This document shows positions 9,801 through 59,505 of a stretch of DNA of 64,000 nt, piece by piece. Source of the stretch: Botryllus schlosseri (taxonomy: Eukaryota); assembly GCA_051294905.1 (NCBI GenBank), contig CM119384.1, positions 6,138,001 to 6,202,000 of the forward strand, read 5' to 3'. Position 1 is the first letter of the stretch, and each line of letters starts with the position of its first letter. Made by a program: the position numbers and the translations under genes. The notes beneath the pieces are model-generated. The model had not been told where the DNA came from and made no database searches. It saw only the letters and a list, made by a program, of their open reading frames with translations.

Positions 9801-12799
9801 GACGGGAGCAAAATAACTCTCGTGGTCTGTTAGTCACGGTAAATTGAACGTGATTATATTTGTACGTACATTCATTCCCAGGATTCCAAGATAAGTTTTG
9901 GTCTTTGCAAATATATGTTATGCCTGTAGCTAAATAACCAATGCTTCCATGTTCTACTTTGCCAATACAACCCGCAATTCAGTTACATCTGATAGATGTA
10001 TCTTGATCGTAAACTTTCAACGTAGCATGCATCGGCGAAAATCATTGGCTATATAGATCGTGAGGTTATATGAGTTGACTTAGATGGTCTATATACCCGA
10101 TTCAAATCTTTCTTGCACTAATCTCTGTACCATATGGCGTCTGGTTTCGGGGATTCCCTTCATCAGTGTGGTCAAAATTGTATGGTAGTTAATTGATCGC
10201 TACGAGTTGAAAGAACGGATAGGACTTATTATTTATTATTCTACCGTGCAGTGGAGATACGAGCGACCGTTGCGATTTTCATTCGCGTGAAATTTCAATT
10301 TGAATTTAATGCATTTTCTGCCGACGATATAATGCTCGACAACAACTTCCGCACATATCGCCGCATCTAACCGTGCAGTCCGAGTGTAAACTTTATAGAT
10401 TTATTCCCGTCAGTTATAATGCATCAACACAGTCGTGTGTTGAGGCTTATCGGATTTTGACCGCAGTCTGTTTGGCTTGAAAGCATTGTCAAAAATCCGT
10501 TATTTTCTCTGACTATTTCCATCATTCGTTGATAAAATAGCCAGTTTAAAATGAAATTATTATTTTATTGCAAAGAGAATGATAAGTTAATGCCTATGAG
10601 CATTATTTCCCGGCGCTACCTCACCGCATATGCATATTCATACCGAGTGTTACAGGTTTAGGGGTTGGGTTAGGGTACTTTTTAACTCGGCCATTTTGCC
10701 GTTCGATAAAAATTCAGGGCGCAAGAAATCCCGAGAATGTAAATTTCAATGCGGTGCTTTTGAAACCTATACTCTATTGTGAACGGTACATATTTCCTAA
10801 TGGAGTATGTTGCTACGATTTTATGGAACCGCTCGAAAGAAATTCTCTCCATGTAAAATAAATACTAATACACTTATATATAGGGTTGCATTAAAAGCAA
10901 ATGGCTGTTAAACAGTTTTAAACTGTGTTTTAAACAAAAACCTATAAAAAAATTGTGTTTTTCAAGTTGTAAAATTATGCCATAATTGTGTAAATACGTT
11001 CCCAAAAACATGTTGTATGATATTATCACCCGATATAGCAGACGTATATCGATATGGGATGCTGGTTGGAACCGTCAAACTAGTCGGTTCAACAGTTATA
11101 GTACAGATATTTCGTCGAAGTAGCTATATCTACCCTGTATTTTCAATTGTCAGAGTCAATACATTATGACGTCACCATTGAACATTGGTGACGTCCTGGC
11201 TTTAAAAAAGGATGTTTTAAACATGTTTGTTTTAAATTGATTTGTGCTTTAAATGCAACCCTACTTATATAGCAATAATTATAGCTATTTGCACTAAGTT
11301 ACGATTTCAGATTTTCTACAATTCGTAAAAATATAATTACCATATAATAATTTATAATCACGCTTCTTGAATAAAAGAGGACAACTAAAAGTCTGGGGGG
11401 TCAGGTTAATACTTAACTTTGTATTATTTTTATTATTTTGTATTAATATTATTAATATTTTTTAGTATTCGTTTGTTCGAATGCTATAAAAATTTTGAAA
11501 ATATACGTCAAACCCTTATTTATATTGATGTCTCGTAAAAATTCCTGATCTTAAACTTCTGAAAACACAATTCGTCGTTCACCTTGCAGACCCAGGTTGA
11601 ACAGTATTCTGCGATTTTCGTACTTTCGAAAATGTCGTGGCAATATGGTGTTTAATGTGATATTTTTATAATCCTGTTCAGTCCACGCTAACTATATATT
11701 GATACTTGGGCACAAACTATAATGCATTTACGCTATAGTTTATAGTATATTTTCTCACCTGCACTCTAGACTCTGAAAGTCCAATTCTAGCAGCCAATTC
11801 TTCTCTCATGAAGATATCGGGATAATGAGTTTTGCGGAAACTCTGCTCCAAATCGTGCAGCTGCGAGGGAGCGAATTTGGTTCTGAATCGTTTTGACTTC
11901 AGTTTCTGCTTGTTTTCCGGCACATGCTTCTTTTGGTCTGTGACTAAGGACTTCGGCTCACGGGCAACATTAGGCTTAGGTAGTTTCAGCTCCTGGTTCT
12001 CGTCGTGTCTTTTAGGGGTCTTCGATCCGGCTGGAGTTTTCCAACAGCTTGTTTGAGATGATGTTTTCTCAAATTCCAGATTCCCCGAGTGAAATTTGTT
12101 TGGATCTTCGAAGAGAAGGTTGCTTTCCTGTTTGAAATCAACGAGAGTCGAATGTGGTCCAGGACTACACCCGGTTTCCTTTGTTGGAAAGTATCCAGAT
12201 TTGGAGGCCGTAACTGTCATTTGATAGAGCTCTACTTCTTTTAGAATTACTTCATCGGAACGATGCGATATAATATCAGGCCAATCGGTACCGACTTCGC
12301 TAGGCAATGAGGACGTCACAAACTGGGAGCACTCGGTACCATTTCTTATATCATACACCGTTTCGACATTCTGTGTGATTTTCTTTTCATGCGTCTGGCG
12401 ATGATCGTAGCTCCAGATGTCCAATGATTTGTTGTTATGAGGACATGCAAGGTTTTGCTGAGAACAATTACCATTGGATGACGATTCCAAGCGTAGTAGT
12501 TCATCATTTTTGCATCCTGAGAGATCTCCATTTTCACTCAGAAAACACCTAGAATATCTTGCCACATTATAACTCATTGTCTCATCGAACGTGTGCGAAT
12601 AAGAATTATCTGCATTCTGGTTAGTCTCTATAAGACCACTAGTATTTCCAGTCGCCAGATACTCATTCGGTATCGAAACCCGTTGATGAGGAGAGTTTAG
12701 ATAGCATTGAACCGAAGAAGTGTCAATTGTTTCTGTGTCAGGTAATACACCGCATGAAGTCATTGCCAACGAATTCATATTCGAATTGGTATATTCCAT
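3864..12799 (-). CDS. OTP: Orthopedia-type PRD-class (Q50) homeobox gene. Exons 12799-11759 and 4091-3864, intron 11758-4092.
   Basis: Spliced homeodomain [47 protein letters not shown]|[12 protein letters not shown]. It matches the Otp signature ([36 protein letters not shown]). Donor CAG|GTGAGA and acceptor TTCAAG|GTT fall at the usual PRD-class Q46/V47 position. Confidence 0.85.
4628..6873. mobile_element. Non-autonomous hAT-like element (TAGGGATG ends) carrying nested insertions
   Basis: Ends tagggatggtgtgaac / gttcacaccatcccta with subterminal ggttcacgttcgcgttc copies at both ends. The 8-bp flanks match only 5/8, so it is probably old. Confidence 0.6.
5444..6706. mobile_element. Non-autonomous hAT (Buster/Charlie-type) element
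   Basis: Ends cagtgtttctcaacc / ggttgagaaccactg; perfect 8-bp TSD gtctacac (5436-5443, 6707-6714). Confidence 0.85.
7652..9493. mobile_element. TIR element of a dispersed family, also at ~5990-6510, ~21540-22365 and ~63330-63815
   Basis: Ends cagagccggaactgccacacc...caattggggggagctcg vs cgagctcgccc...caattggggg...ggtgcggcagttacggtgctg. Internal ~150-bp direct duplication (8430-8570 vs 8750-8900). No TSD recovered. Confidence 0.55.
10881..11263. mobile_element. hAT (Ac-type) MITE
   Basis: Ends tagggttgcatt / aatgcaacccta; perfect 8-bp TSD cttatata (10873-10880, 11264-11271). Confidence 0.88.
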
Positions 12800-35015: not shown

Positions 35016-36559
35016 CTCTTACATCGCCTAGGCCAGGTGGGTGTCTGATTTCGAAGACTACTCCAAGTCCTTTCGACACCTTCCTATCTTTTATTGTATG
35101 TCAGTCTTGTTGAGTATTGAAATGATGAAATTTTTAGCAATAAATTTAATTGAAATTGAAAATAGTGTGGAACGGCATCTCGCCGGCTATCCGACAGTCT
35201 TCGAGCGTGTCTGTCCACATTCATTGCGAAATACAAGCAATTAGGCCTATTACTGAATCAATACTAGTCAGCACTCAAAATTAGAAGACCACAACCCAGT
35301 GTTGGGAGCAAGTCACTACCTTTGAGTCACGAGTCATCCCGAGTCATTGCACATTTTGACTCGAGTCAAGTCAAGTCAAATCACGAGTCAAGTCAAAATT
35401 CAAGTCAAATTAAAATTTCGAAGTATGAGTGACGAAAGTCATTACATTTTGTTAGCTGTGTGGAAGACAGATTAATTATTCAGCTATCGTGATCAAATAA
35501 CGAATACAAGTATATGCAAAAAGGCGTTGTATCGCTCAGGCATACGTAGAACTGCTAATATGATACGTGAGCAACTGCATAGCTAGCTGCATGCTACAGC
35601 GGTCTGTTATCGTAAGCCAAAATAGAGGATCTATTACGAAGCCTCGAGAAGTTGAAACAAATTGATATGTTAAATACACCACCCACCTACACAACTGTAC
35701 ATGCATATTTGCTGTACCACCATCATCGCCGTCTGTTTGTTATGTATTTTGATTATATGAAAATAAAGACTCTCTCTCTCTCTCGTCACTGGTGCTCATG
35801 GTCAGCGTTTCGGGTATCTATCGATGAAGTGAACCATGACATGAATCCGTAAAATATAATTTCGTTGAGTCACGCATTGAATCTGAGCAAGAATTCGCAA
35901 GATCGCTGCTTACCATTCAAGACGCTGTATTTAATCATGTCGTAAGGATCAATGTATTCTAATGAAACGGAGCTGGAACTAACTGGCCAGGCCGAACACT
36001 TTTGTGTGTTGCAGACTATTCTGTAGTGAGATCTCTGATGATTTAGTGCCGCCTGAGATACTCGTATCCATATCTCACTTTCCACGACTCCTTAGGCTCA
36101 GATTAATTTCAGTTGAGTTTATTATGGATTTCACCGCGGATATTCAATTTATTTGAATGAATTCGGTTCGTTGCAGGTGTGTATACCTGCTATGTTTAAT
36201 GCTGTCTCATGACACCTTGAGCTATAAAGTCATAGTCAATAGCAACTTTTCATTAGCTCATATAGGAAATGAGAATATAATGCTAATGCACCAGGGTGAA
36301 GTTAGCCCTCAACGATTTGGCCCTCAAAGTAAAAATTACCAACTAATATACTCACGACAGCATGAATCCAATGGATCACCATTTTTGAAATATCGACCAT
36401 GATCTAAATCTCAAACGCCACACGTAGTATTTTCATGAAATCAAATCAAAGCATTGGCCTGCAACAAACCTAGAATGATGATATTTCGCTTGACGTAACA
36501 AACCCGATCTGCACATCCCTCTGGTTACTTATGCCACCATTATATTTTTTTTATAATTA

Positions 36560-38390
36560 ACATTGATCTCTCTACAGTGGAAAATAAAGAGCATCGAATA
36601 TTGAAATCAGAACGAATAAAACTACTACCTAGCAAATTAATCACACACCGAGTCTTGACTTCTGACAGGAGCCGATTAGGGTCCAGATCAGAGGATGAAG
36701 ATTCTCTGTTTAGACAAATTAACATGATCGCTCTGCAGTGGAAAAAATAAAGAGCGTCGAATCTTGAAATAAGAACGAATAAAACTACTACCTAGCACAT
36801 TAATCACACACCGAGTCTTGACTTCTGACAGGAGCCGATTAGGGTCCAGATCAGAGGATGAAGATTCTCTGTTTAGACGAATTAACATGATCGCTCTGCA
36901 GTGGAAAAAATAAAGAGCGTCGAATATTGGAATCAGAACGAATAAATCTGCTACCTAGCACATTAATCACACACCGAGTCTTGACTTCTGACAGGAGCCG
37001 ATTAGGGTCCAGATCCGAGGATGAAGATTCTCTGTTTAGACAAATTAACATGATCGCTCTGCAGTGGAAAAAATAAAGAGCGTCGAATCTTGAAATCAGA
37101 ACGAATAAAACTACTACCTTGCAAATTAATCACACACCGAGTCTTGACTTCTGACAGGAGCCGATTAGGGTCCAGATCAGAGGATGAAGATTCTCTGTTT
37201 AGACAAATTAACATGATCGCTCTGCAGTGGAAAAAATAAAGAGCGTCGAATCTTGAAATAAGAACGAATAAAACTACTACCTAGCACATTAATCACACAC
37301 CGAGTCTTGACTTCTGACAGGAGCCGATTAGGGTCCAGATCAGAGGATGAAGATTCTGTTTAGACGAATTACCATGATCGCTCTGCAGTGGAAAAAATAA
37401 AGAGCGTCGAATCTTGAAATCAGAACGAATAAAACTACTACCTAGCACATTAATCACACACCGAGTCTTGACTTCTGACAGAAGCCGATTAGGGTCCTGA
37501 TCAGAGGATGAAGATTCTCTGTTTAGACGAATTAACATGATCGCTCTGCAGTGGAAAAAATAAAGAGCGTCGAATATTGGAATCAGAACGAATAAAACTA
37601 CTACCTAGCACATTAATCACACACCGAGTCTTGACTTCTGACAGGAGCCGATTAGGGTCCAGATCCGAGGATGAAGATTCTCTCTTAAGACAAATTAACA
37701 TGATCGCACTACAGTGGAAAAAATAGGGAGCGTCGAATATTGAAATCAGAACGAATAAAACTACTACCTAGCACATTAATCACACACCGAGTCTTGACTT
37801 CTGACAGAAGCCGATTAGGGTCCTGATCAGAGGATGAAGATTCTCTGTTTAGACGAATTAACATGATCGCTCTGCAGTGGAAAAAATAAAGAGCGTCGAA
37901 TATTGGAATCAGAACGAATAAATCTGCTACCTAGCACATTAATCACACACCGAGTCTTGACTTCTGACAGGAGCCGATTAGGGTCCAGATCAGAGGATGA
38001 AGATTCTCTGTTTAGACAAATTAACATGATCGCTCTGCAGTGGAAAAAATAAAGAGCGTCGAATCTTGAAATCAGAACGAATAAAACTACTACCTAGCAC
38101 ATTAATCACACACCGAGTCTTGACTTCTGACAGGAGCCGATTAGGGTCCAGATCCGAGGATGAAGATTCTCTCTTAAGACAAATTAACATGATCGCACTA
38201 CAGTGGAAAAAATAAGGAGCGTCGAATATTGGAATCAGAACGAATAAATCTACTGCCTAGCACATTAATCACACACCGAGTCTTGACTTCTGACAGGAGC
38301 CGATTAGCATCGAGATCAGAGGATGAAGATTCTCTGTTTAGACGAATTAACATGATCGCTCTGCAGTGGAAAAAATAAAGAGCGTCGAAT
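36560..38390. repeat. Left-arm tandem array, ~11 units of 163 bp
   Basis: Unit marker cagtggaaaa recurs every 163 bp from ~36577 to ~38367 (one unit has a 2-bp deletion). The repeated 66-aa ORFs in the track share this spacing. Confidence 0.95.
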
Positions 38391-39944
38391 CCGAGGATGA
38401 AGATAACAAAGAAGATAACGGAGTATTGGGATAGAGTCCTGGAATGAAGACCTACAGATAACATCGGCATATGAAAAAGCCAGTTTATCTTTATTCTTGC
38501 TGTGCAATGGTGCGTGTAATGTAAATATAATCTTATGGACGGAGAAACGTTTGCTATAGGCTACTCTGCGACGAAATCGAAAAGCAGACAGCAAATTATA
38601 AGAATCGGATTTCTCCGGATTGTGAATGGTTTGTTTACAGTCGTGTAATGAGCGGTTTCGAAATCTAGGTGAATAGCTAATAGCCTACCTCGCATTCATT
38701 TTCTGGTAATGGACGAAAAGAAATATACAAAAAAATCTATGATCTAGTAAAGTAACAGAACGAAAAAACATTATTCTTTGCATTCGGATCAATACAATGA
38801 CATATATTCGTTTTCTGAAACATCATTCGAGAAACAATTCCGATGGAACCATCGGCCGCACTGACCCAGATACCCATGCTACTGTTTCATTTTGCGTTGC
38901 GCGATATATGAACCACTCGAGCTATAATCCAATTACACAGTTCGGGAGAACGTTATCATTTCCAGTAAATAAAAACAATACTCAGTCGTACATATAATAA
39001 CGGCCTTGATAGGTCGACCGTTTTGTGCTAACCTAGTTTCAAGAGTATCGGCGTTTGCGTATGCCACACATTGGCAGTTAATTTCTGCTGACTCGAAAAA
39101 GCAGCTGGCGATTATATTAGAAATTCCACGCTAAAACTTTTTTGGAGGTAGCGCTGTGAATAGTAGTTTTAACAATAGCTATAGTTATTTTGCTTGTAAG
39201 CGCAGTTAGTTAGACACATTGTCATTCATTTATATTGGCAGACTTGTACAAACTACCTATTTAGTTAGTTAACGGTCAACTAACTAACGGTTTTTTGAGT
39301 AGTTCAAATTCTTGTTCTAAATGCGTATTTTGAAAAGTGTATCGCTCTAGTTCTCGATATAGCTGCGGATATTGAAAGTGAGTAGTTCTAGTTCAATAAG
39401 TTGCTGATTTTGAAAATTAAGTTCTAGTTGCACATTTGAAGAAATTATTTTTATTATTATTTTTTTTTCAAATTTCACTCGCTTGTCAGGTTGCCTAAAA
39501 AACGTTACAAACCAAATTTGGGTCAATTTCGACCAGTAAAGACCGCAACTGCGCGTCGTTCGGCATCCTCATACGTGTTCTACATGGCATGGTGTCTTAT
39601 CGCATTGTGTGGGTCTTAATCGGATGAAAATATAATCTCCATATTATTGATCATTGTCTTTCCATACAATTGTCTTCACTTGCCTAGTAATACGACAATG
39701 CGCTTTATTGCGGAGTGCGAGTACTGGTCGAAATTGACCCAAATTTGGTTTGTAGCGTTTTTTAGGCAACCTGACAATTTTATCATTAAGCGAGTGAAAT
39801 TTGGAAAAAGAGGTTATTTTTGAACAACCCTATTGTGTAACCATTCAATTCTGATTCGGTATTAGACCGTCCAAATTATAGTACTCATCCTCTTCCAGCA
39901 TCGATGTATCAAAGATTTGACGAAGGTTATGAATAATTAAGGAT

Positions 39945-42900
39945 ATGAAAATTTCGATGTTCAATGTTGGCAGTTTTGCTGACGGAATGCTTGCGTTCGG
40001 CGTGAGTGACGTCAAGGTACCTGGGTTCTGGAATTTCATCGTAGACCACCTCTTTAGCAATCGTAGATTCACCAAAAAAGAAAAACATACCGCAAAAAGA
40101 TTAGGTTTGAAGTTTTGGGAAAAACACGAGACTGAGATTTTGGCGAGGTTGAACGATATTGGCTCGCAATCAGATAATGTCGAGTCAATCAGGGATGTTG
40201 ATTGCATGGGCCTGGACGATGTTGAGGGGGTGGATTCCAAACGTACATCCGATGTCGCGCTGGTGGATAGTTATTCACTTTCGTCACATGAGAGTCTTCC
40301 TTCAGATCATGATACGTGTGAATTTGATAAGGAAGTAGATTTTACCAGTAATTCAACTTCGCTGCAACCAAACTCTCCACCATGTGAAAGCGATGAAGTG
40401 GCCAAATCTTTGAAAAATACCCGCTCTGTCAGTACGCCAGATAATGATGGAAGAGACTCGCCGTTATCGTTGGACATTCATCATGACCAGGAAATTCCTT
40501 CTGAGCAACAGCCAAATCAACATCCAACCCCGGAGACGTCTCATCCGTTCGGAAAGACGCCTGTCTGGATTGGCGAAGATCTGCCAAACGAATGCTCGTT
40601 TGAGATATCTCAGGACGATTGGAAATCGATTGCCGACTCCGTCGTTGGCCGGACCATAACATTGAATACCTGGACCGATATTGTGCGGGCTGGCTTGAAG
40701 GGGTCTAATCCTTACTGCAGTTACGCTTTCAAGCGACATAATTTCAATGGATTAAACTCCAACCACGTTTTGGTGTGCTACGGCAAATGCACGTTCAAAT
40801 CATGCCTTGGCAAAATAAAAATATTATGCCATTGTGCAAATCCTCGCAAATTTCAAGTTTTTTTCTCTGGAAAAATCATACATGTTGGTATCAAGTCAAC
40901 AAGGCTCTCCGGAAAACGCAGATTAGAGTTCAAAAAACTTTTAAGAAATGGAAAGCCTCGTGAAACAGCGCTGCATTTTCTTGGGAAAATACCCGAACAT
41001 GTTTTTCAATCAGGAAACCGCGATGGTTCGCCATCTCAAAGTGTCCTCAAGAAGGCTAAGCAGGAAGCGAACAAAATTGACGTGCCCGATGCTGACCAGT
41101 GGGCCGCTCTGGATATGATTCGCCAGAGACAGGTAGCTCGGGACCAAGACAAAGAAATCTACGGTACGCTCCAGGATTTTTCTCGCAAGGCTGGGTTCAT
41201 TCTGCTTTGGTCTGAAGAATCTTTGCGCATCTTCCATAAACTTGGGGCAATAGATGCCATGTATCTCGACTGCACAGGTAGCATAATGCGGGGTATGGAC
41301 AAAACGTATTATATATACGAGATCGTCGCTAGACACCCAGTACCTAGAAAAGCTCCTATCGCACTTGCGTCTTTCATTAGTTGTCATCACGATACTATCA
41401 GCGTCACATCATTTCTATTACAATTCCGACGTGACGAGAAAAAACTATTCGGACCCAAGCATACAGTAAGAAAATTTGTTTGCGATGGCAGTATGGTTCT
41501 TATAAAATCGATTTTGATGATATTCATGGAAGAACTTTTAGATCATTACCTCGAAAGATGCTACCGAGCAGTTGTTGGTAAAGCGAAACCGAATGACTTG
41601 AAGAAGCCTTTCATCAGGCTGTGTGCCAGTCACATAATGAAAAATTTCAAGTACCTATGTAAAAAGAATCCAAAACGATTTTCGGAGATGATGTATATCT
41701 TTGGATTGATGGTGATTTCATCCGATTGGGAATCGATTCGATCTCAAGTTTATCACCTGACAGTTTTGTTGAACACTCGCGACGAAAATTTAGCAAATAC
41801 CTCTCTTTCCTATTTTAATCAAAACATTGAGGTGGAAAAATCAGAGATAACTTTGCTGTTATCAGAAAGCTCTTCTGAAGAGGAGGAAGAAGACTTTGAA
41901 TTCGAAACAGATTATTCCTTCGTTCAGGAATTCAAGACAATCATTTCATCGGCTCTGAAACTAGTGAATGACACGGCATGTGAGGGAACAAATCTTTTCT
42001 ACAGCCCCGCCATATTCGCTCATTTTGAGAAATATATTGTACCCAAAATCCCACTCTTCACGGGTCTTTTATCTGGAGATTTGTCTCGTTTGGGAATCGG
42101 CGATGAGTATCGCAACTATGCTGCCTTTTATAAATCCTTACAGGCGTCGCCATTTCAAAATCTAACAAAAGAATGTCGGACGAGTGGGCCTATGGAGAAA
42201 TCTAATCAGGAGTTGAAGTCTACTCGTTTGAGAGGTCGAAAATGCTCTCGTCTCGACGAATTCGCCATAATTTATGACGAACTGAATACTGCGCTCCTCA
42301 GAGAATTTCAGGACAGCTGCATATTACCCCTTGGCAAAAAACGCATTCGCAAATCAATTCCTTCATCTTCGAAAGATGAATACAAAGAGGAGGTGGAAGT
42401 GTGGCAAAGGTCCGACCCCAATAGGCCACCAATTAATACCGTCGGGAAATATTTCCAGCCACCCGGTAAGGATTTGCGAGGGGTTAACAAGGCTAAATCC
42501 GCTGGTATATCCAGGGATAAAAGACATCGCTTCCCGCTGAAGGATCGTTTCAACTGTGAATGGGTCGCAGCACCACGGCTGAATGGTGTTCCGACACCCT
42601 CTCGGAGCATTCTCGTTTCCAGTTCGAGATGGTTGAACAGTGACATCATCGATCACTTCATGTGGATGTTACATTGCAAATTTCCGGGTATTGATGGCCT
42701 CTCATGTAGTAGCCTTTATCTTTCCAGCTGCAAGCCTGCATACACACCTCGCTCCAAATTTGTGCAAATAATAAATATTAACAGAAATCATTGGATCACT
42801 GTCTCGAATGTCTTTTCGTCCCAAGAAAACGAAGTGCATATATACGATTCGGCATTCAACAGATATGCATATAGAACCGCTGCTACCCAATGCTCAATCG

Positions 42901-43328
42901 CAAAACTTTGTCGACCAGAATCCCAGGACATAATCGTATCTTTCCCGCAAGTTCAGCAGCAGAATAACACAAGCGATTGTGGTGTTTTCGCAATCGCATT
43001 CGCAATCTCCCTTTGTCATGGAGTGCGGCCAGAATGCGCAGAATACCCAAGCCCTTATCTCCGACGATCATGTCTTGCAATGATGACGAGTCAGGCGATT
43101 CAACAATTACAAATCTCAACAAGTGAAACGTTACCTGCTGTGTGGACCTCGTTTACCATAAAAACGTATTGCATCTGTTTCCTGCCATTTGACAGTGACA
43201 ATCAAGAAGACATGGTGGAATGCACTCAGTGCAAGCGATGGTTTCATGTAAATTGCTCTGTGGTTCCTATCTCGCATGAAGTCGTGGAAAACGAAAGTGT
43301 TCCATGGTACTGCTCCGAATGCAAATAA
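39945..43328 (+). CDS. 1127-aa MULE/NOF-like transposase fused to a Ulp1 (C48) cysteine protease and a C-terminal PHD finger
   Basis: Putative catalytic set D442 (YLDCTG), D514 (VCDGS), C560xxH563 (LCASH), E751 (PMEKSN). Upstream CTFKSC..H zinc-finger-like motif. Ulp1 motifs WLNSDII, NH949W, YD968S, QQQNNTSDC1012G. PHD C4HC3: CIC..CTQC..HVNC..CSEC. No stops or frameshifts. Confidence 0.88.
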   Translation: MKISMFNVGSFADGMLAFGVSDVKVPGFWNFIVDHLFSNRRFTKKEKHTAKRLGLKFWEKHETEILARLNDIGSQSDNVESIRDVDCMGLDDVEGVDSKRTSDVALVDSYSLSSHESLPSDHDTCEFDKEVDFTSNSTSLQPNSPPCESDEVAKSLKNTRSVSTPDNDGRDSPLSLDIHHDQEIPSEQQPNQHPTPETSHPFGKTPVWIGEDLPNECSFEISQDDWKSIADSVVGRTITLNTWTDIVRAGLKGSNPYCSYAFKRHNFNGLNSNHVLVCYGKCTFKSCLGKIKILCHCANPRKFQVFFSGKIIHVGIKSTRLSGKRRLEFKKLLRNGKPRETALHFLGKIPEHVFQSGNRDGSPSQSVLKKAKQEANKIDVPDADQWAALDMIRQRQVARDQDKEIYGTLQDFSRKAGFILLWSEESLRIFHKLGAIDAMYLDCTGSIMRGMDKTYYIYEIVARHPVPRKAPIALASFISCHHDTISVTSFLLQFRRDEKKLFGPKHTVRKFVCDGSMVLIKSILMIFMEELLDHYLERCYRAVVGKAKPNDLKKPFIRLCASHIMKNFKYLCKKNPKRFSEMMYIFGLMVISSDWESIRSQVYHLTVLLNTRDENLANTSLSYFNQNIEVEKSEITLLLSESSSEEEEEDFEFETDYSFVQEFKTIISSALKLVNDTACEGTNLFYSPAIFAHFEKYIVPKIPLFTGLLSGDLSRLGIGDEYRNYAAFYKSLQASPFQNLTKECRTSGPMEKSNQELKSTRLRGRKCSRLDEFAIIYDELNTALLREFQDSCILPLGKKRIRKSIPSSSKDEYKEEVEVWQRSDPNRPPINTVGKYFQPPGKDLRGVNKAKSAGISRDKRHRFPLKDRFNCEWVAAPRLNGVPTPSRSILVSSSRWLNSDIIDHFMWMLHCKFPGIDGLSCSSLYLSSCKPAYTPRSKFVQIININRNHWITVSNVFSSQENEVHIYDSAFNRYAYRTAATQCSIAKLCRPESQDIIVSFPQVQQQNNTSDCGVFAIAFAISLCHGVRPECAEYPSPYLRRSCLAMMTSQAIQQLQISTSETLPAVWTSFTIKTYCICFLPFDSDNQEDMVECTQCKRWFHVNCSVVPISHEVVENESVPWYCSECK

Positions 43329-43464
43329 TGAGATTTTTTGCTGCTGCCACTTTACTCTGTCGTCGCAGATTTCATATAATTCAAGTCCTCGGCCCTATTC
43401 CGATTCTGTCAGAATATGTCATAACTCAGTGTGTGAATAGTGTGCGATGTCTCAGTTTCATTCG

Positions 43465-46010
43465 TTCTTATTTCAATGTGCTAGGTAGTAGTTTTATTCG
43501 TTCTGATTTCAATATTCGACGCTCTTTATTTTTTCCACTGCAGAGCGATCATGTTAATTCGTCTAAACAGAGAATCTTCATCCTCTGATCTCGATGCTAA
43601 TCGGCTCCTGTCAGAAGTCAAGACTCGGTGTGTGATTAATGTGCTAGGTAGTAGTTTTATTCGTTCTGATTCCAATATTCGACGCTCTTTATTTTTTCCA
43701 CTGTAGTGCGATCATGTTAATTTGTCTTAAGAGAGAATCTTCATCCTCGGATCTGGACCCTAATCGGCTCCTGTCAGAAGTCAAGACTCGGTGTGTGATT
43801 AATGTGCTAGGTAGTAGTTTTATTCGTTCTGATTTCAATATTCGACGCTCTTTATTTTTTCCACTGCAGAGCGATCATGTTAATTCGTCTAAACAGAGAA
43901 TCTTCATCCTCTGATCTCGATGCTAATCGGCTCCTGTCAGAAGTCAAGACTCGGTGTGTGATTAATGTGCTAGGTAGTAGTTTTATTCGTTCTGATTTCA
44001 ATATTCGACGCTCTTTATTTTTTCCACTGCAGAGCGATCATGTTAATTCGTCTAAACAGAGAATCTTCATCCTCTGATCTCGATGCTAATCGGCTCCTGT
44101 CAGAAGTCAAGACTCGGTGTGTGATTAATGTGCTAGGTAGTAGTTTTATTCGTTCTGATTTCAATATTCGACGCTCTTTATTTTTTCCACTGTAGTGCGA
44201 TCATGTTAATTTGTCTTAAGAGAGAATCTTCATCCTCGGATCTGGACCCTAATCGGCTCCTGTCAGAAGTCAAGACTCGGTGTGTGATTAATGTGCTAGG
44301 TAATAGTTTTATTCGTTCTGATTCCAATATTCGACGCTCTTTAGTTTTTCCACTGTAGTGCGATCATGTTAATTTGTCTTAAGAGAGAATCTTCATCCTC
44401 GGATCTGGACCCTAATCGGCTCCTGTCAGAAGTCAAGACTCGGTGTGTGATTAATGTGCTAGGTAGTAGTTTTATTCGTTCTGATTTCAATATTCGACGC
44501 TCTTTATTTTTTCCACTGCAGAGCGATCATGTTAATTCGTCTAAACAGAGAATCTTCATCCTCTGATCTCGATGCTAATCGGCTCCTGTCAGAAGTCAAG
44601 ACTCGGTGTGTGATTAATGTGCTAGGTAGTAGTTTTATTCGTTCTGATTCCAATATTCGACGCTCTTTAGTTTTTCCACTGTAGTGCGATCATGTTAATT
44701 TGTCTTAAGAGAGAATCTTCATCCTCTGATCTGGACCCTAATCGGCTCCTGTCAGAAGTCAAGACTCGGTGTGTGATTAATGTGCTAGGTAGTAGTTTTA
44801 TTCGTTCTGATTTCAATATTCGACGCTCTTTATTTTTTCCACTGTAGTGCAATCATGTTAATTTGTCTTAAGAGAGAATCTTCATCCTCGGATCTGGACC
44901 CTAATCGGCTCCTGTCAGAAGTCAAGACTCGGTGTGTGATTAATGTGCTAGGTAGTAGTTTTATTCGTTCTGATTTCAAGATTCGACGCTCTTTATTTTG
45001 TCCACTGCAGAGCGATCATGTTAATTTGTCTAAACAGAGAATCTTCATCCTCTGATCTCGATGCTAATCGGCTCCTGTCAGAAGTCAAGACTCGGTGTGT
45101 GATTAATGTGCTAGGTAGTAGTTTTATTCGTTCTGATTCCAATATTCGACGCTCTTTAGTTTTTCCACTGTAGTGCGATCATGTTAATTTGTCTTAAGAG
45201 AGAATCTTCATCCTCTGATCTGGACCCTAATCGGCTCCTGTCAGAAGTCAAGACTCGGTGTGTGATTAATGTGCTAGGTAGTAGTTTTATTCGTTCTGAT
45301 TTCAATATTCGACGCTCTTTATTTTTTCCACTGTAGTGCAATCATGTTAATTTGTCTTAAGAGAGAATCTTCATCCTCGGATCTGGACCCTAATCGGCTC
45401 CTGTCAGAAGTCAAGACTCGGTGTGTGATTAATGTGCTAGGTAGTAGTTTTATTCGTTCTGATTTCAAGATTCGACGCTCTTTATTTTGTCCACTGCAGA
45501 GCGATCATGTTAATTTGTCTAAACAGAGAATCTTCATCCTCTGATCTGGACCCTAATCGGCTCCTGTCAGAAGTCAAGACTCGGTGTGTGATTAATGTGC
45601 TAGGTATTAGATTTATTCGTTCTGATTCCAATATTCGACGCTCTTTAGTTTTTCCACTGTAGTGCGATCATGTTAATTTGTCTTAAGAGAGAATCTTCAT
45701 CCTCGGATCTGGACCCTAATCGGCTCCTGTCAAAAGTCAAGACTCGGTTTGTGATTAATGTGCTAGGTAGTAGTTTTATTCGTTCTGATTTCAAGATTCG
45801 ACGCTCTTTATTTTGTCCACTGCAGAGCGATCATGTTAATTTGTCTAAACAGAGAATCTTCATCCTCTGATCTGGACCCTAATCGGCTCCTGTCAGAAGT
45901 CAAGACTCGGTGTGTGATTAATGTGCTAGGCATTAGATTTATTCGTTCTTATTTCAAGATTCGACGCTCTTTATTTTCCACTGTAGAGCAATCATGTCAA
46001 TTATAAAAAA
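43465..46010. repeat. Right-arm tandem array, ~15-16 units of 163 bp, inverted relative to the left arm
   Basis: Marker ttttccactg recurs every 163 bp from ~43530 to ~45976 and is the reverse complement of the left-array unit. Confidence 0.95.
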
Positions 46011-46799
46011 AAATATAATGGTAAAGTAACCAGAGGGATGTGCAGATCGGGTTTGATTCGTCAAGCGAAATATATTAGGTTATGTCTTAGTAATAGTTGA
46101 ATCACCATAATCAACCCTTAAAATATTATCATTCTAGGTTTGTTTCAGGCCAATGCTTTGATTTGATTTCATGAAAATACTACGTGTGGCGTTTGAGATT
46201 TACAGATCATGGTCGATATTTCGAAAATGGTGATCCATTGGATTCATGCTGTCGTGAGTATATTAGTTGGTAATTTTTACTTTGAGGGCCAAATCGTTGA
46301 GGGCTAACTTCACCCTGGTTGCTAATGCAGTATACTATAGTATATATATCGCAGCCAGACTCTGAACAGTGGTTGTGTTCGGCAATAAGTCATGAGTCTT
46401 TCTTGCATAGAATTAATCGAATAGAAAGCAGTGTGTGACAGGTGACATCGCTACCATGCATTTCACTCTTGAGCAGACAGAAAGTTCTTACGAAAAAGTA
46501 AAAAGTATACTGTTGGCATGAGTTTGCATCACTTTTATTACTGAAATTGCCTTAGAAACCGAGGGATGTACCTATAAATACTGATTGATGACCGCGTTGA
46601 TTATAATTTACATCTATATTTGAGGCTATCATTGTATCATATATTATAGTCATTCTAGATTTGTCAGATCAATCTTGCTATTTAGAATGGTGCATTTGAC
46701 TAGCAAACAGGTGAAATCTGGCTCTACTCTATACTTATTCAAACAAACAAGTTGAGTATTGACATCAGTAATTTTACTTTTTTTGAGCAGCAATATATA

Positions 46800-57270: not shown

Positions 57271-57963
57271 GCTATTACGAATATTTACACTGATTCCTAA
57301 ATATCACTGGCTCGCATCATTTTCTATCCGGTCTTTGCATACCTTGTTTACCTATCTCATGCCATCTCAACAGTTGCACTTGCGCGGCATATTCATAATT
57401 CCCCAAGCCTCCCGAACCATTCTGTCCAATTAGCACTATATGTTTTGCTGGATAAGTCGGGTCAATGTTATATTGCAAACACACACTGCAAGTGATGAGT
57501 CCATTAGTTCTGAGTTAGCTGCAATTGTCACTGTAAATGTAAAGACACTTATTATGGCAATGACATGTACTTGTTGATTGTCCCTTGTCTTATGACATTG
57601 ATCATCAAATTATCATTAACTGGCAATCGATATCCACATATCATAACGAATCATTCATTTCTTGTATACACAGTATCCAACATTTTTTGCTCAAATTCTC
57701 ATAATAGTAATTCACTGAGAAATATATATAAATATTGAAATAAACCCGTATATTTTCAGTTGACACTCTGCATGGATAATCGTCAGCAACCATAGTGAAG
57801 CATTGAAAAAAACATTGTGTATCACCAATCACAGCGCCAAATATGTAAAATTGATATCTTTGATTCTACAGTTGATACTACGTCTAGGCATGAGAATTTT
57901 ATAACGAATGGTCCAGGCCATTGATGTGGAGAAATTTCTCAAGTTCCCCGAATAGTTTTGTAT

Positions 57964-59505
57964 ATGGCTGGTAGGGAAAAAAAGAGATCATCACCCCGTA
58001 AACGCACAAGAAACGCTAGCAAGAGCACAGATAGGAAGACCACCGGTGTCAATACTCGCAACTCAACGTCGAAAAGCGCCCGGAACTCCCCGATCAACAG
58101 TCCGAAGAAAAGAGTAAAACGCGACAGCAAAGTACAAATCGATACAAAAGCAGAAAACGGTACAAACGGAACGAAAACCGAGAAAGAGCTTCTGGTTTGT
58201 GTTCTGGAGAAGCAAGCAGGAATGTTACAAAAAACTCGAAGTAGTACTCGCCATGTGGAAAGAGGAGAGGCTGCGACTATCCAAAAACTCGCTACTTCAG
58301 TAGCAAAATTGGAAATCGGCAATTGCGAAAAGGGCGGAATAGAGCAATACTACCACACGAAAATCCGAGACTTGCAAATGGTCGTGAACGAAAAAGCCAA
58401 AAATGTACGCAGACTGCAAGCTCAGCGCAACGAGTTGAATTCAAAAGTACGCATGTTACGAGAGGAATTACAGCTCCTGCAAGAACAAGGGTCATCTGTC
58501 GGAGAAGTCGTCAAGCCCATCGACAAGAAAAAGGTTCTTGTAAAGGTTCATCCCGAGGGAAAGTTTGTTGTCGATATCGACAAGGCCATTAATATCGAAG
58601 ACGTGACACCAAACTCTCGTGTGGCGCTGAGAAGCGACAGCTACGTCCTGCACAAGATTCTGCCCAACAAAGTCGACCCTCTCGTGTCTCTTATGATGGT
58701 GGAAAAAGTGCCAGACTCCACCTACGAAATGGTCGGCGGCTTGGACAAGCAGATCAAAGAAATTAAAGAGGTAATCGAATTGCCGGTGAAACATCCAGAG
58801 CTTTTTGAAGCTCTCGGCATCGCGCAGCCGAAGGGAGTACTTTTGTACGGACCTCCAGGCACCGGGAAGACCTTGCTCGCGAGAGCTGTTGCTCATCACA
58901 CGGACTGCACTTTCATCAGAGTGTCGGGATCGGAGCTGGTTCAGAAATTTATCGGAGAAGGATCAAGAATGGTGCGAGAGCTGTTTGTAATGGCTCGCGA
59001 GCATGCTCCGTCTATCATCTTCATGGACGAAATTGATTCTATCGGCTCCTCAAGGCTGGAAAGTGGAAGCGGTGGCGGAGATTCCGAGGTGCAGAGGACG
59101 ATGCTGGAACTGCTAAACCAACTGGACGGTTTTGAGGCTCATCAAAATATCAAAGTCATCATGGCCACCAATCGTATCGATATTCTCGACAGTGCGTTGC
59201 TCAGACCCGGCCGAATCGACCGGAAAATCGAGTTCCCCCCACCGAACGAGGCCGCTAGGCTCGACATTTTGAGGATCCACTCGAGGAAGATGAATTTGAC
59301 GCGAGGCATCGATCTCGGGAAGATTGCCGAGCAAATGCCCGGAGCTTCCGGGGCTGAAGTGAAAGGCGTCTGTACGGAAGCCGGGATGTACGCGCTGAGG
59401 GAACGCCGCGTCCACGTGACACAGGAAGACTTTGAAATGTCGGTCGCTAAGATAATGCAAAAAGACACCGAAAAGAACATGTCCATGAAGAAACTTTGGA
59501 AGTAA
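57964..59505 (+). CDS. PSMC5: 26S proteasome AAA-ATPase Rpt6: 513 aa unspliced, or 403 aa if 57971-58300 is spliced out
   Basis: Near-identical to Rpt6 from IEQYY onward: [19 protein letters not shown] (Walker A), IIFMDEID (Walker B), [10 protein letters not shown], and the C-terminus MSMKKLWK. First ATG at 57964 (the ORF track starts at a TTG). AATAAA at ~59690. Confidence 0.97.

Follow-up and report, generated by a model that had tools for sequence, protein, structure and literature searches.

A probable Rehavkus/NOF-type foldback transposon of Botryllus schlosseri and the conserved Ulp1-PHD module of its transposase

Introduction

Rehavkus elements have been present in Repbase since about 2008. 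Published descriptions give them a 9-bp target site duplication (TSD), one open reading frame (ORF), a PHD finger, a minisatellite and terminal inverted repeats (TIRs) of 26-400 bp (PMC6446971, Table 1), with reference elements of 4.9-18.5 kb (PMC6446971, Table S1), and they are treated either as part of the superfamily of Mutator-like elements (MULEs) or as an outgroup to it (PMC6446971). The Rehavkus elements of Tribolium have been described as foldback transposons with tandem satellite repeats in their inverted ends (bioRxiv 10.1101/2024.12.02.626372). Here we describe an element of about 10.0 kb in the genome of Botryllus schlosseri that compares closely with these descriptions. It occupies positions 36290-46319 of a stretch of 64,000 nucleotides (GenBank assembly GCA_051294905.1, contig CM119384.1, positions 6,138,001 to 6,202,000 of the forward strand), hereafter called the window, to which all positions refer unless stated otherwise. 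Its single ORF encodes a transposase fused in frame to an Ulp1-type protease domain and a terminal PHD finger. An original prediction, made from the letters of the window, had presented the locus as an intact Foldback/NOF-like Mutator element, had read the protease and the PHD finger as an anti-silencing module, and had suspected that the combination of three domains and satellite-bearing arms might be new among invertebrates.

Several other described systems share parts of this architecture. Muta1 of Aedes aegypti is a characterized foldback MULE; its transposase binds a terminal motif and excises the element by way of hairpins that form on flanking DNA, and a larger number of subterminal repeats leads to more transposase binding and excision (PMC5499845). 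C-terminal PHD fingers were noted on MULE transposases in 2006, and a WRKY-GCM1-type DNA-binding finger has been described for these enzymes (PMC1702500). Ulp1 domains occur in MuDR-type (Mutator) elements of hydra and lancelet, and the Ginger1-9_HM transposase was reported in 2010 to carry Ulp1 together with PHD (PMC2836005). The same report included an alignment of these two domains from Ginger1 and Mutator transposases, and proposed a role in transposition for the ubiquitin (Ub) or ubiquitin-like (Ubl) proteases of Ginger1/MuDR-type elements (PMC2836005). Why eukaryotic DNA transposases often carry ubiquitin/SUMO-family proteases and chromatin readers has been an open question since about 2006-2010, and a clean and complete copy is a convenient substrate for it.

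Results and Discussion

A new member of an already described branch

The locus is best explained as a DNA transposon that moves autonomously by cut and paste and belongs to the Rehavkus/NOF-type branch of the Mutator (MULE) superfamily, and we consider this explanation probable. It reveals no new kind of element; it is a new member of a branch that has already been described. All defining traits of Rehavkus are found here, namely a 9-bp TSD, a single ORF, a PHD finger (C-terminal in our protein) and long inverted termini that bear a minisatellite, and the length of the element lies within the range of the reference elements. Three differences should be mentioned: an Ulp1 domain is present here and is not mentioned in the cited descriptions (PMC6446971), the reference hosts are arthropods and an annelid whereas the host here is B. 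schlosseri, and the arm repeat has a unit of 163 bp, which differs from the Rehavkus references.

The transposase sequence itself is likely to belong to Rehavkus, as judged by comparing it block by block and by eye with six published Rehavkus DDE sequences (PMC6446971, supplementary file 2), all conserved blocks of which are recognizable in our protein. In the block FIS..HDT.SV, 8 of 12 residues are identical with Rehavkus-1_HR, and in the block L-C-x-x-H-x-x-K-N the count is 9 of 12 with Rehavkus-3_TC. The other blocks in common are LD-[A/S/C]-TGS around the first Asp, the block of the second Asp, N-x-F/Y-Y ... K-Y-x-P-x-x-P-L-W/F-S/T, and R-T/V-S/T-N ... E ... K.

The ends of the element agree with this placement. 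A 9-bp TSD, about 95 bp of identical terminal sequence and inverted arms of several kilobases had been predicted, and all are present at the positions given in Table 1, the identical ends measuring 96 bp when the left end is compared with the reverse-complemented right end. Beyond these 96 bp the two ends can be aligned to about 265 bp, with 3-4 mismatches, one 2-bp indel and one 53-bp indel in the right end. The arms are of unequal length (about 2.1 kb on the left versus 2.85 kb on the right), and the element contains no N's. A higher-order period was also observed in the 163-bp repeat, in that copies 489 bp (three units) apart are 96-97% alike versus 93-95% for neighbors.

The predicted uninterrupted ORF of 1127 aa was confirmed, and its D-D-CxxH-E residues (D442, D514, C560-x-x-H563 and E751) are present and conserved. 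Relatives were collected by an exhaustive search of representative proteins, which gave 3923 relatives, 62 of them below 1e-30; it was used in place of a word-indexed search of poor recall (2-3 matches). When 38 diverse relatives were aligned over residues 200-870, D442, Y458, D514, C560 and H563 were invariant, and E751 was a glutamate in 30 of the 31 sequences that cover the position.

Structure comparison points to the same branch. The AlphaFold (AF2) model of residues 200-870 has a mean predicted local distance difference test score (pLDDT) of 83 and a predicted template modeling (TM) score (pTM) of 0.73. Its top Foldseek match among the Swiss-Prot models is the Drosophila NOF-FB 120.7-kDa protein (P16320; E 7e-28, TM 0.64, model residues 14-671), 16 orders of magnitude ahead of the next structural match. 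Further matches of the fold in that set are K. lactis alpha3, FAR1/FHY3/FRS, ZSWIM proteins and bacterial IS256-family transposases, all of which are MULE relatives or MULE-derived, and among the PDB structures matched by the core are transposases of the IS256 family (ISCth4) and of the P element. The four strands at the N-terminal side of the model are matched by the DNA-binding domain of AtWRKY18 (TMt 0.53-0.63, Foldseek against the PDB); several WRKY profiles were also matched when the core profile was compared with PDB sequences, consistently but weakly and without significance.

The placement should nevertheless be interpreted with some caution, since two sets of observations weigh against it. 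The comparison with the Rehavkus blocks was made by eye against a published alignment, without statistics, a tree or an E-value. Moreover, a Pfam search with the central 660 aa or with the core alone gave no match even at E 10, the MULE model PF10551 included, and among the 38 relatives the MULE model gave only 2 weak matches, the best of which (9e-4) lies below the cut-off. Because the Pfam MULE model stays below threshold, placement in the superfamily rests on fold, motifs and TSD; MULEs are known by a TSD of 8-11 bp, most often 9, and by an IS256-related DDE/RNase-H-like transposase in which a C/DxxH motif follows the second D. Such behavior fits a divergent clade such as Rehavkus, which has been used as an outgroup of canonical MULEs. 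The original assignment to Foldback/NOF-like Mutator elements is borne out by the NOF-FB protein as top structural match, the 9-bp TSD, the CxxH motif and the WRKY-type finger; of the domains named with it, Peptidase_C48 and PHD were recovered by Pfam and a MULE-type fold by structure, whereas the Pfam MULE model was not.

Table 1. Features of the element and its neighbors in the window
Feature	Positions	Strand	Remarks
Left 9-bp TSD copy, TGCTAATGC	36281-36289	.	Identical to 46320-46328; directly outside element end
Left terminal inverted repeat, unique part	36290-36554	+	First 96 bp identical to right end
Left arm, 163-bp minisatellite, 11.3 copies	36555-38390	+	Tandem Repeats Finder (TRF) score 3285, 94% matches
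Internal 5' region, presumed promoter and 5' untranslated region (UTR)	38391-39944	+	Contains nested repeat resembling a miniature inverted-repeat transposable element (MITE) at about 39470-39806
Single ORF, 1127 aa, transposase-Ulp1-PHD fusion	39945-43328 (stop included)	+	No internal stop
Conserved N-terminal region, about 75 aa	39945-40169	+	M1, A12, W29, I65, L66 the same in 5 paralogs, even where identity falls to 9-22%
WRKY-GCM1-type zinc-finger DNA-binding domain, residues about 255-315	40707-40889	+	Four-strand sheet in model
DDE/RNase-H-like catalytic core with helical insertion, residues about 405-790	41157-42314	+	D442, D514, C560xxH563, E751
Ulp1/SENP-type (C48, clan CE) cysteine protease, residues about 885-1060	42597-43124	+	H949, D968, Q1006, C1012
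C4HC3 PHD finger, residues 1073-1127	43161-43325	+	Cage positions Y1075, F1082, M1090, W1099
Right arm, 163-bp minisatellite, 15.5 copies	43475-46002	-	94% matches; inverted relative to left arm
Right terminal inverted repeat, unique part	46003-46319	-	53-bp insertion relative to left end
Right 9-bp TSD copy, TGCTAATGC	46320-46328	.	Directly outside element end
Homeodomain ORF	11717-12799	-	Neighbor of element
Proteasomal AAA-ATPase (Rpt-type subunit) ORF, 515 aa, uninterrupted	57958-59505	+	Downstream of element; listed start codon TTG

Comparison with related systems

With FB-NOF of D. melanogaster our element shares the foldback layout, the internally repetitive inverted arms, the many arms-only copies and the best structural match, but in the structural alignment to the NOF protein the identity is only 16%. 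The arm repeats of Drosophila FB elements also have much shorter units than 163 bp. Muta1 is similar in its DDE transposase, its TSD of 8-9 bp and its subterminal tandem repeats (PMC5499845), and differs in being 3.2 kb long with 12-bp repeats, in having neither protease nor PHD, in belonging to another MULE clade, and in being recognized by the Pfam MULE model.

As regards the accessory domains, Ginger1-9_HM is likewise an animal DNA transposon with Ulp1 plus PHD at the C-terminus of its transposase, whereas the transposase of Ginger1 is Gypsy-integrase-like and its TSDs are different. The Ulp1-bearing MULEs of plants (Kaonashi/KI-MULEs; melon, rice and Arabidopsis), as cited in PMC2836005, are Mutator elements with a C48 domain as well. 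Their ULP-like gene is generally viewed as a captured host sequence and is often a separate ORF in non-autonomous elements, whereas in our element the C48 domain is in frame with the transposase, conserved, under selection and followed by a PHD finger. Kaonashi/KI-MULEs are recognized by an ULP sequence that was acquired from a host gene and lies outside the transposase, and this does not describe the element studied here.

The suspected novelty of the three-domain, satellite-armed combination could consequently not be sustained, since the Rehavkus traits are found in PMC6446971, and Ulp1 in animal Mutator elements as well as an Ulp1 plus PHD transposase in PMC2836005. What our results add is the purifying selection on both accessory domains, a PHD finger that resembles the H3K4me3-reader type, and a census of the family.

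The Ulp1-PHD module

The protease domain is recognized by Pfam (PF02902, Peptidase_C48, residues 942-1040) at 2.6e-6 and 27.9 bits versus a cut-off of 20.7, and profile comparison gave SENP1 (9e-8) and Ulp1 (7.5e-7). A complete H-D-C triad with its oxyanion glutamine had been predicted, and H949, D968, C1012 and Q1006 are indeed present and nearly invariant: among 37 diverse sequences, aligned over the last 268 residues, W950, Q1006, C1012 and G1013 show no variation, H949 is kept in 36 and D968 in 35. The model of the C-terminal part has a pLDDT of 90.5, and its top Foldseek matches are Ulp1 (1euv), SENP5, SENP1, SENP7 and SENP2.

The terminal C4HC3 PHD finger was confirmed in the same way, by a match to Pfam PF00628 (5.4e-8, residues 1076-1126) and by the presence of all eight zinc ligands (C1076, C1078, C1093, C1096, H1101, C1104, C1123 and C1126), each of them invariant or nearly so in the 37 sequences. 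Its profile matches PHF2 (2e-15), PHF8, SHL, EBS, DIDO1, BPTF, Spp1/CFP1 and TAF3, which are readers of histone H3 trimethylated at lysine 4 (H3K4me3), and its structural matches (Foldseek) include the PHD-H3K4me3 complexes of DIDO, PHF2 and PPS. The positions that build the methyl-lysine cage in PHF2 and BPTF are occupied here by Y1075, F1082, M1090 and W1099, and three of these four positions are kept in the family (M1090 in 30/37, W1099 in 35/37, Y1075 conserved). In its sequence, the finger resembles those of the H3K4me3-reader type.

The substrate of the protease was approached by complex prediction. The partner was the genome's own SUMO, encoded by an intronless SUMO2/3-like gene (L041:1453-1758, that is G000:C6, about 5581492-5581797) of 102 codons, whose mature form of 92 aa ends in QQTGG. 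The predicted complex with the Ulp1 domain reached an ipSAE of 0.49 versus 0.02 for the best control, at least 81% of contacts were shared between runs, and the pLDDT of the partner was at least 78. We rate this as weak support, since the mark applied to such scores was reached by 51 of 78 solved pairs and by 2 of 108 mismatches, and a score of 0.60 or lower turns out wrong in more cases than right, except where the guess was already likely.

Three further points tell against a simple reading of the module as an H3K4me3 reader joined to a SUMO protease. Cage position two (F1082) varies among family members; the highest TM-score of the protease model belongs to DEN1/NEDP1, a NEDD8 protease, so that the Ubl substrate cannot be assigned from the fold; and the modeled SUMO complex may owe its score to a memory of solved SENP-SUMO complexes.

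Age and spread of the module

Two lines of evidence support that the fusion is old and that all three of its parts are constrained. The ratio of nonsynonymous to synonymous substitution rates (dN/dS), measured against the 77%-identical paralogs, is lowest in the DNA-binding and catalytic part (0.18), lies at 0.23-0.29 in Ulp1 and at about 0.25 in PHD, and rises to 0.42-0.62 in the linker and the low-complexity N-terminal part. When the 48%-identical paralogs are taken instead, the identities across the three domains are 0.49, 0.51 and 0.40, a divergence that we call equal. The ORF start and the transposase-Ulp1-PHD order are kept in paralogs, the latter at both 77% and 48% identity. Very probably, then, the Ulp1-PHD part is an old and selected portion of the transposase and no recent capture. 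Relaxed selection on this part, which the original prediction had named as evidence that would speak against its anti-silencing reading, was not seen when the two domains were set beside the catalytic core.

The rest of the protein is less easily named. The N-terminal residues 1-75 match no Pfam family and could form an oligomerization or partner-binding helix. They are followed, to about residue 205, by a segment that is rich in Ser and Asp by composition and presumably disordered.

A USP/UCH ubiquitin protease is frequent among relatives of the transposase, in addition or instead, and AlphaFold DB clusters of the same fold are automatically named USP-, Ulp-, PHD- or MULE-domain proteins. Among the relatives that bear names are predicted proteins from two teleost fishes.

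The same Ulp1-PHD module, with all catalytic and zinc residues, was also observed at the C-terminus of two other proteins, P0128 (1085 aa) and P0044 (780 aa). Their N-terminal 500-850 aa have no detectable homology to our transposase (hhalign probability 0.4%) and match no Pfam family; the Atlas lead was only 0.81, to PF20700, and they were assigned to no transposase family. These proteins may represent another transposase superfamily that carries the same cassette. A third protein ending in Ulp1-PHD is a distant member of the transposase family described here. It could be speculated that Ulp1-PHD is a portable "chromatin cassette" exchanged among unrelated animal DNA-transposon superfamilies (Rehavkus/NOF-type MULEs, Ginger1 and others), which would couple H3K4me3 reading to local SUMO removal and thereby steer integration into open chromatin or blunt SUMO-dependent silencing, but we regard so broad a reading as rather unlikely.

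Copies in the genome

The terminal 265 bp of the element (tip ACCAGGGTGAAG...) recur on at least 12 further ends in the genome. Most copies consist of arms only and measure 2.6-6.8 kb, the same situation as that of Drosophila FB elements without NOF. Perfect 9-bp TSDs, each of a different sequence, were present in five of the eight two-ended copies compared, this copy included, and the TSD reported here is not a chance match because four further copies carry perfect 9-bp duplications of unrelated sequence. The other three two-ended copies (L033, L034 and L037) have perfect tips and no matching 9-bp duplication, which suggests that copies have recombined with one another and that the foldback arms may thereby have mediated chromosomal rearrangements.

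The nearest relative with coding sequence lies on contig 8, is 97.8% identical and contains one stop, and both the 5' region and roughly the first 257 codons are absent from it; the other copies of the family are 2-13% diverged or deleted, and the copy in the window is the only full-length one of its subfamily. Counting genome copies, as had been proposed with the original prediction, accordingly gave one full-length copy and arms-only derivatives besides the other ends mentioned above; in this census, a single copy that is probably autonomous would serve a population of arms-only foldbacks. The wider protein family has 45 matching places in the genome, with long open paralogs of about 1161 aa at 77% identity and of 1060-1320 aa at about 48%. 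Two fragments coding for Ulp1-PHD, at G000:C17:2653347-2654306 and 2669458-2670417, lie 16 kb apart, have equal scores and are both 48% identical to the query; the pair looks like a local segmental duplication.

A model for transposition and for the module

From sequence, structural model and analogy, the protein very probably combines a WRKY-type zinc finger with a DDE core (D442, D514, E751 and C560xxH563) and acts in the manner of Muta1, with the arms-only copies as passengers. By that analogy, the transposase would recognize the terminal motif as well as the subterminal units repeated in each arm, the 163-bp units serving as its binding platform; excision would proceed via hairpins formed on the flanking DNA, and reinsertion would involve a 9-bp staggered cut. 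Arms-only foldback copies would move as non-autonomous passengers of the same enzyme.

The module would act at the site itself. The PHD finger would dock the transposase on nucleosomes with H3K4me3, at open promoters, and the protease would remove SUMO or a related Ubl there; its targets would be the transposase itself or factors of chromatin, repair or silencing. On its sequence, docking on H3K4me3-marked open chromatin is a tentative suggestion that we put forward with slightly more doubt than belief, and for SUMO as the substrate, which the modeled complex weakly favors, we see the arguments as evenly balanced. The net effect may be target choice, help with repair or escape from silencing.

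Alternative explanations

Recent activity of the element is plausible, because the TSD and the ORF are intact and the sister copy is 97.8% identical, all of them properties of the DNA sequence. It could be argued instead that mobility has been lost behind an intact appearance, the copy being silent or its promoter disrupted and the family ageing, and several observations weigh on that side. A bulk RNA run, 6% of which was sampled, gave 0 reads on the element, a run guessed to be RNA gave short low-depth contigs only, and a single-cell RNA run gave few reads, in repeats only; no splice joint inside the ORF was found in the sampled RNA runs, but this sampling was shallow (3-6% of runs) and is a valid test neither of silence nor of the module being spliced out. 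A MITE-like repeat is nested roughly 140 bp upstream of the ATG, where it could disturb the promoter. Moreover, no other copy of the subfamily is full-length, the remaining copies have diverged or suffered deletions, and 3/8 two-ended copies lack a TSD. On the other side, an ORF of 3.4 kb is uninterrupted with all catalytic residues present, the TSD shows no mismatch, and the two tips do not differ over 96 bp. On balance we consider loss of mobility possible but rather doubtful. The description of the element as intact can be kept for the ORF, the TSD and the tips, which are complete, provided that the nested repeat and the lack of a second full-length copy in the subfamily are borne in mind.

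As to the module, the anti-silencing reading of the original prediction holds that the PHD finger brings the transposase to chromatin, where Ulp1 strips SUMO from the SUMO-dependent silencing machinery, so that the element keeps itself expressed. SUMO-dependent silencing of transposons is established, selection has kept the catalytic residues of the protease across deep divergence, the fold comes closest to SENP/Ulp1, and the modeled SUMO complex (ipSAE 0.49) lends weak support to SUMO binding; MULEs also encode anti-silencing proteins of another kind, such as VANC of VANDAL, as cited in PMC6446971. However, H3K4me3 marks active promoters and not silenced transposons, so the module would act where silencing is absent, and the USP/UCH proteases in the same clade point to a more general need for Ub/Ubl removal, for instance at DNA breaks. 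Since the PHD profile matches H3K4me3 readers, tethering to active chromatin, and thus target choice, fits at least as well, and we hold anti-silencing to be unlikely. Even less can be said for a self-processing polyprotein, in which the Ulp1-like protease would cut the fusion and free the transposase and a PHD-bearing piece: clan CE does include processing proteases, one of which, adenain, was matched by the fold, and self-processing was once proposed for OTU-bearing MULE transposases (PMC1702500), but the absence of Gly-Gly from the whole 1127-aa protein argues against it, the closest folds are Ubl-specific isopeptidases, and a Pfam scan found no Ubl-like domain in the protein, which makes this a very improbable explanation. 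Host sequences are known to be captured by MULEs, Ulp1 in plants among them (PMC2836005 and references therein), and it could be hypothesized that Ulp1-PHD is a fragment of a host gene that was picked up recently and serves no function, comparable to the captures of plant Pack-MULEs and Kaonashi. We find this hardly credible, and the captured-passenger reading is largely refuted by the in-frame fusion, whose order is the same in 48%-identical paralogs and in distant relatives, by the equal divergence of the three parts and the low dN/dS (0.23-0.29), and by catalytic residues and zinc ligands that are invariant or nearly so in 37 sequences. Our preferred explanation remains that of an old, selected Ulp1-PHD module on a Rehavkus/NOF-type transposase.

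Nested repeat and surroundings

The MITE-like repeat in the internal 5' region is about 340 bp long, with inverted ends of roughly 85-115 bp. Segment 39460-39840 has many dispersed matches in the genome, and a 1.55-kb query containing the repeat gave 4782 first-look candidates. In a sister copy on contig 10 (C10), the repeat is absent. The element as a whole is intergenic, with no enclosing repeat seen, and it has a homeodomain ORF and an Rpt-type proteasomal ATPase ORF as neighbors (Table 1).

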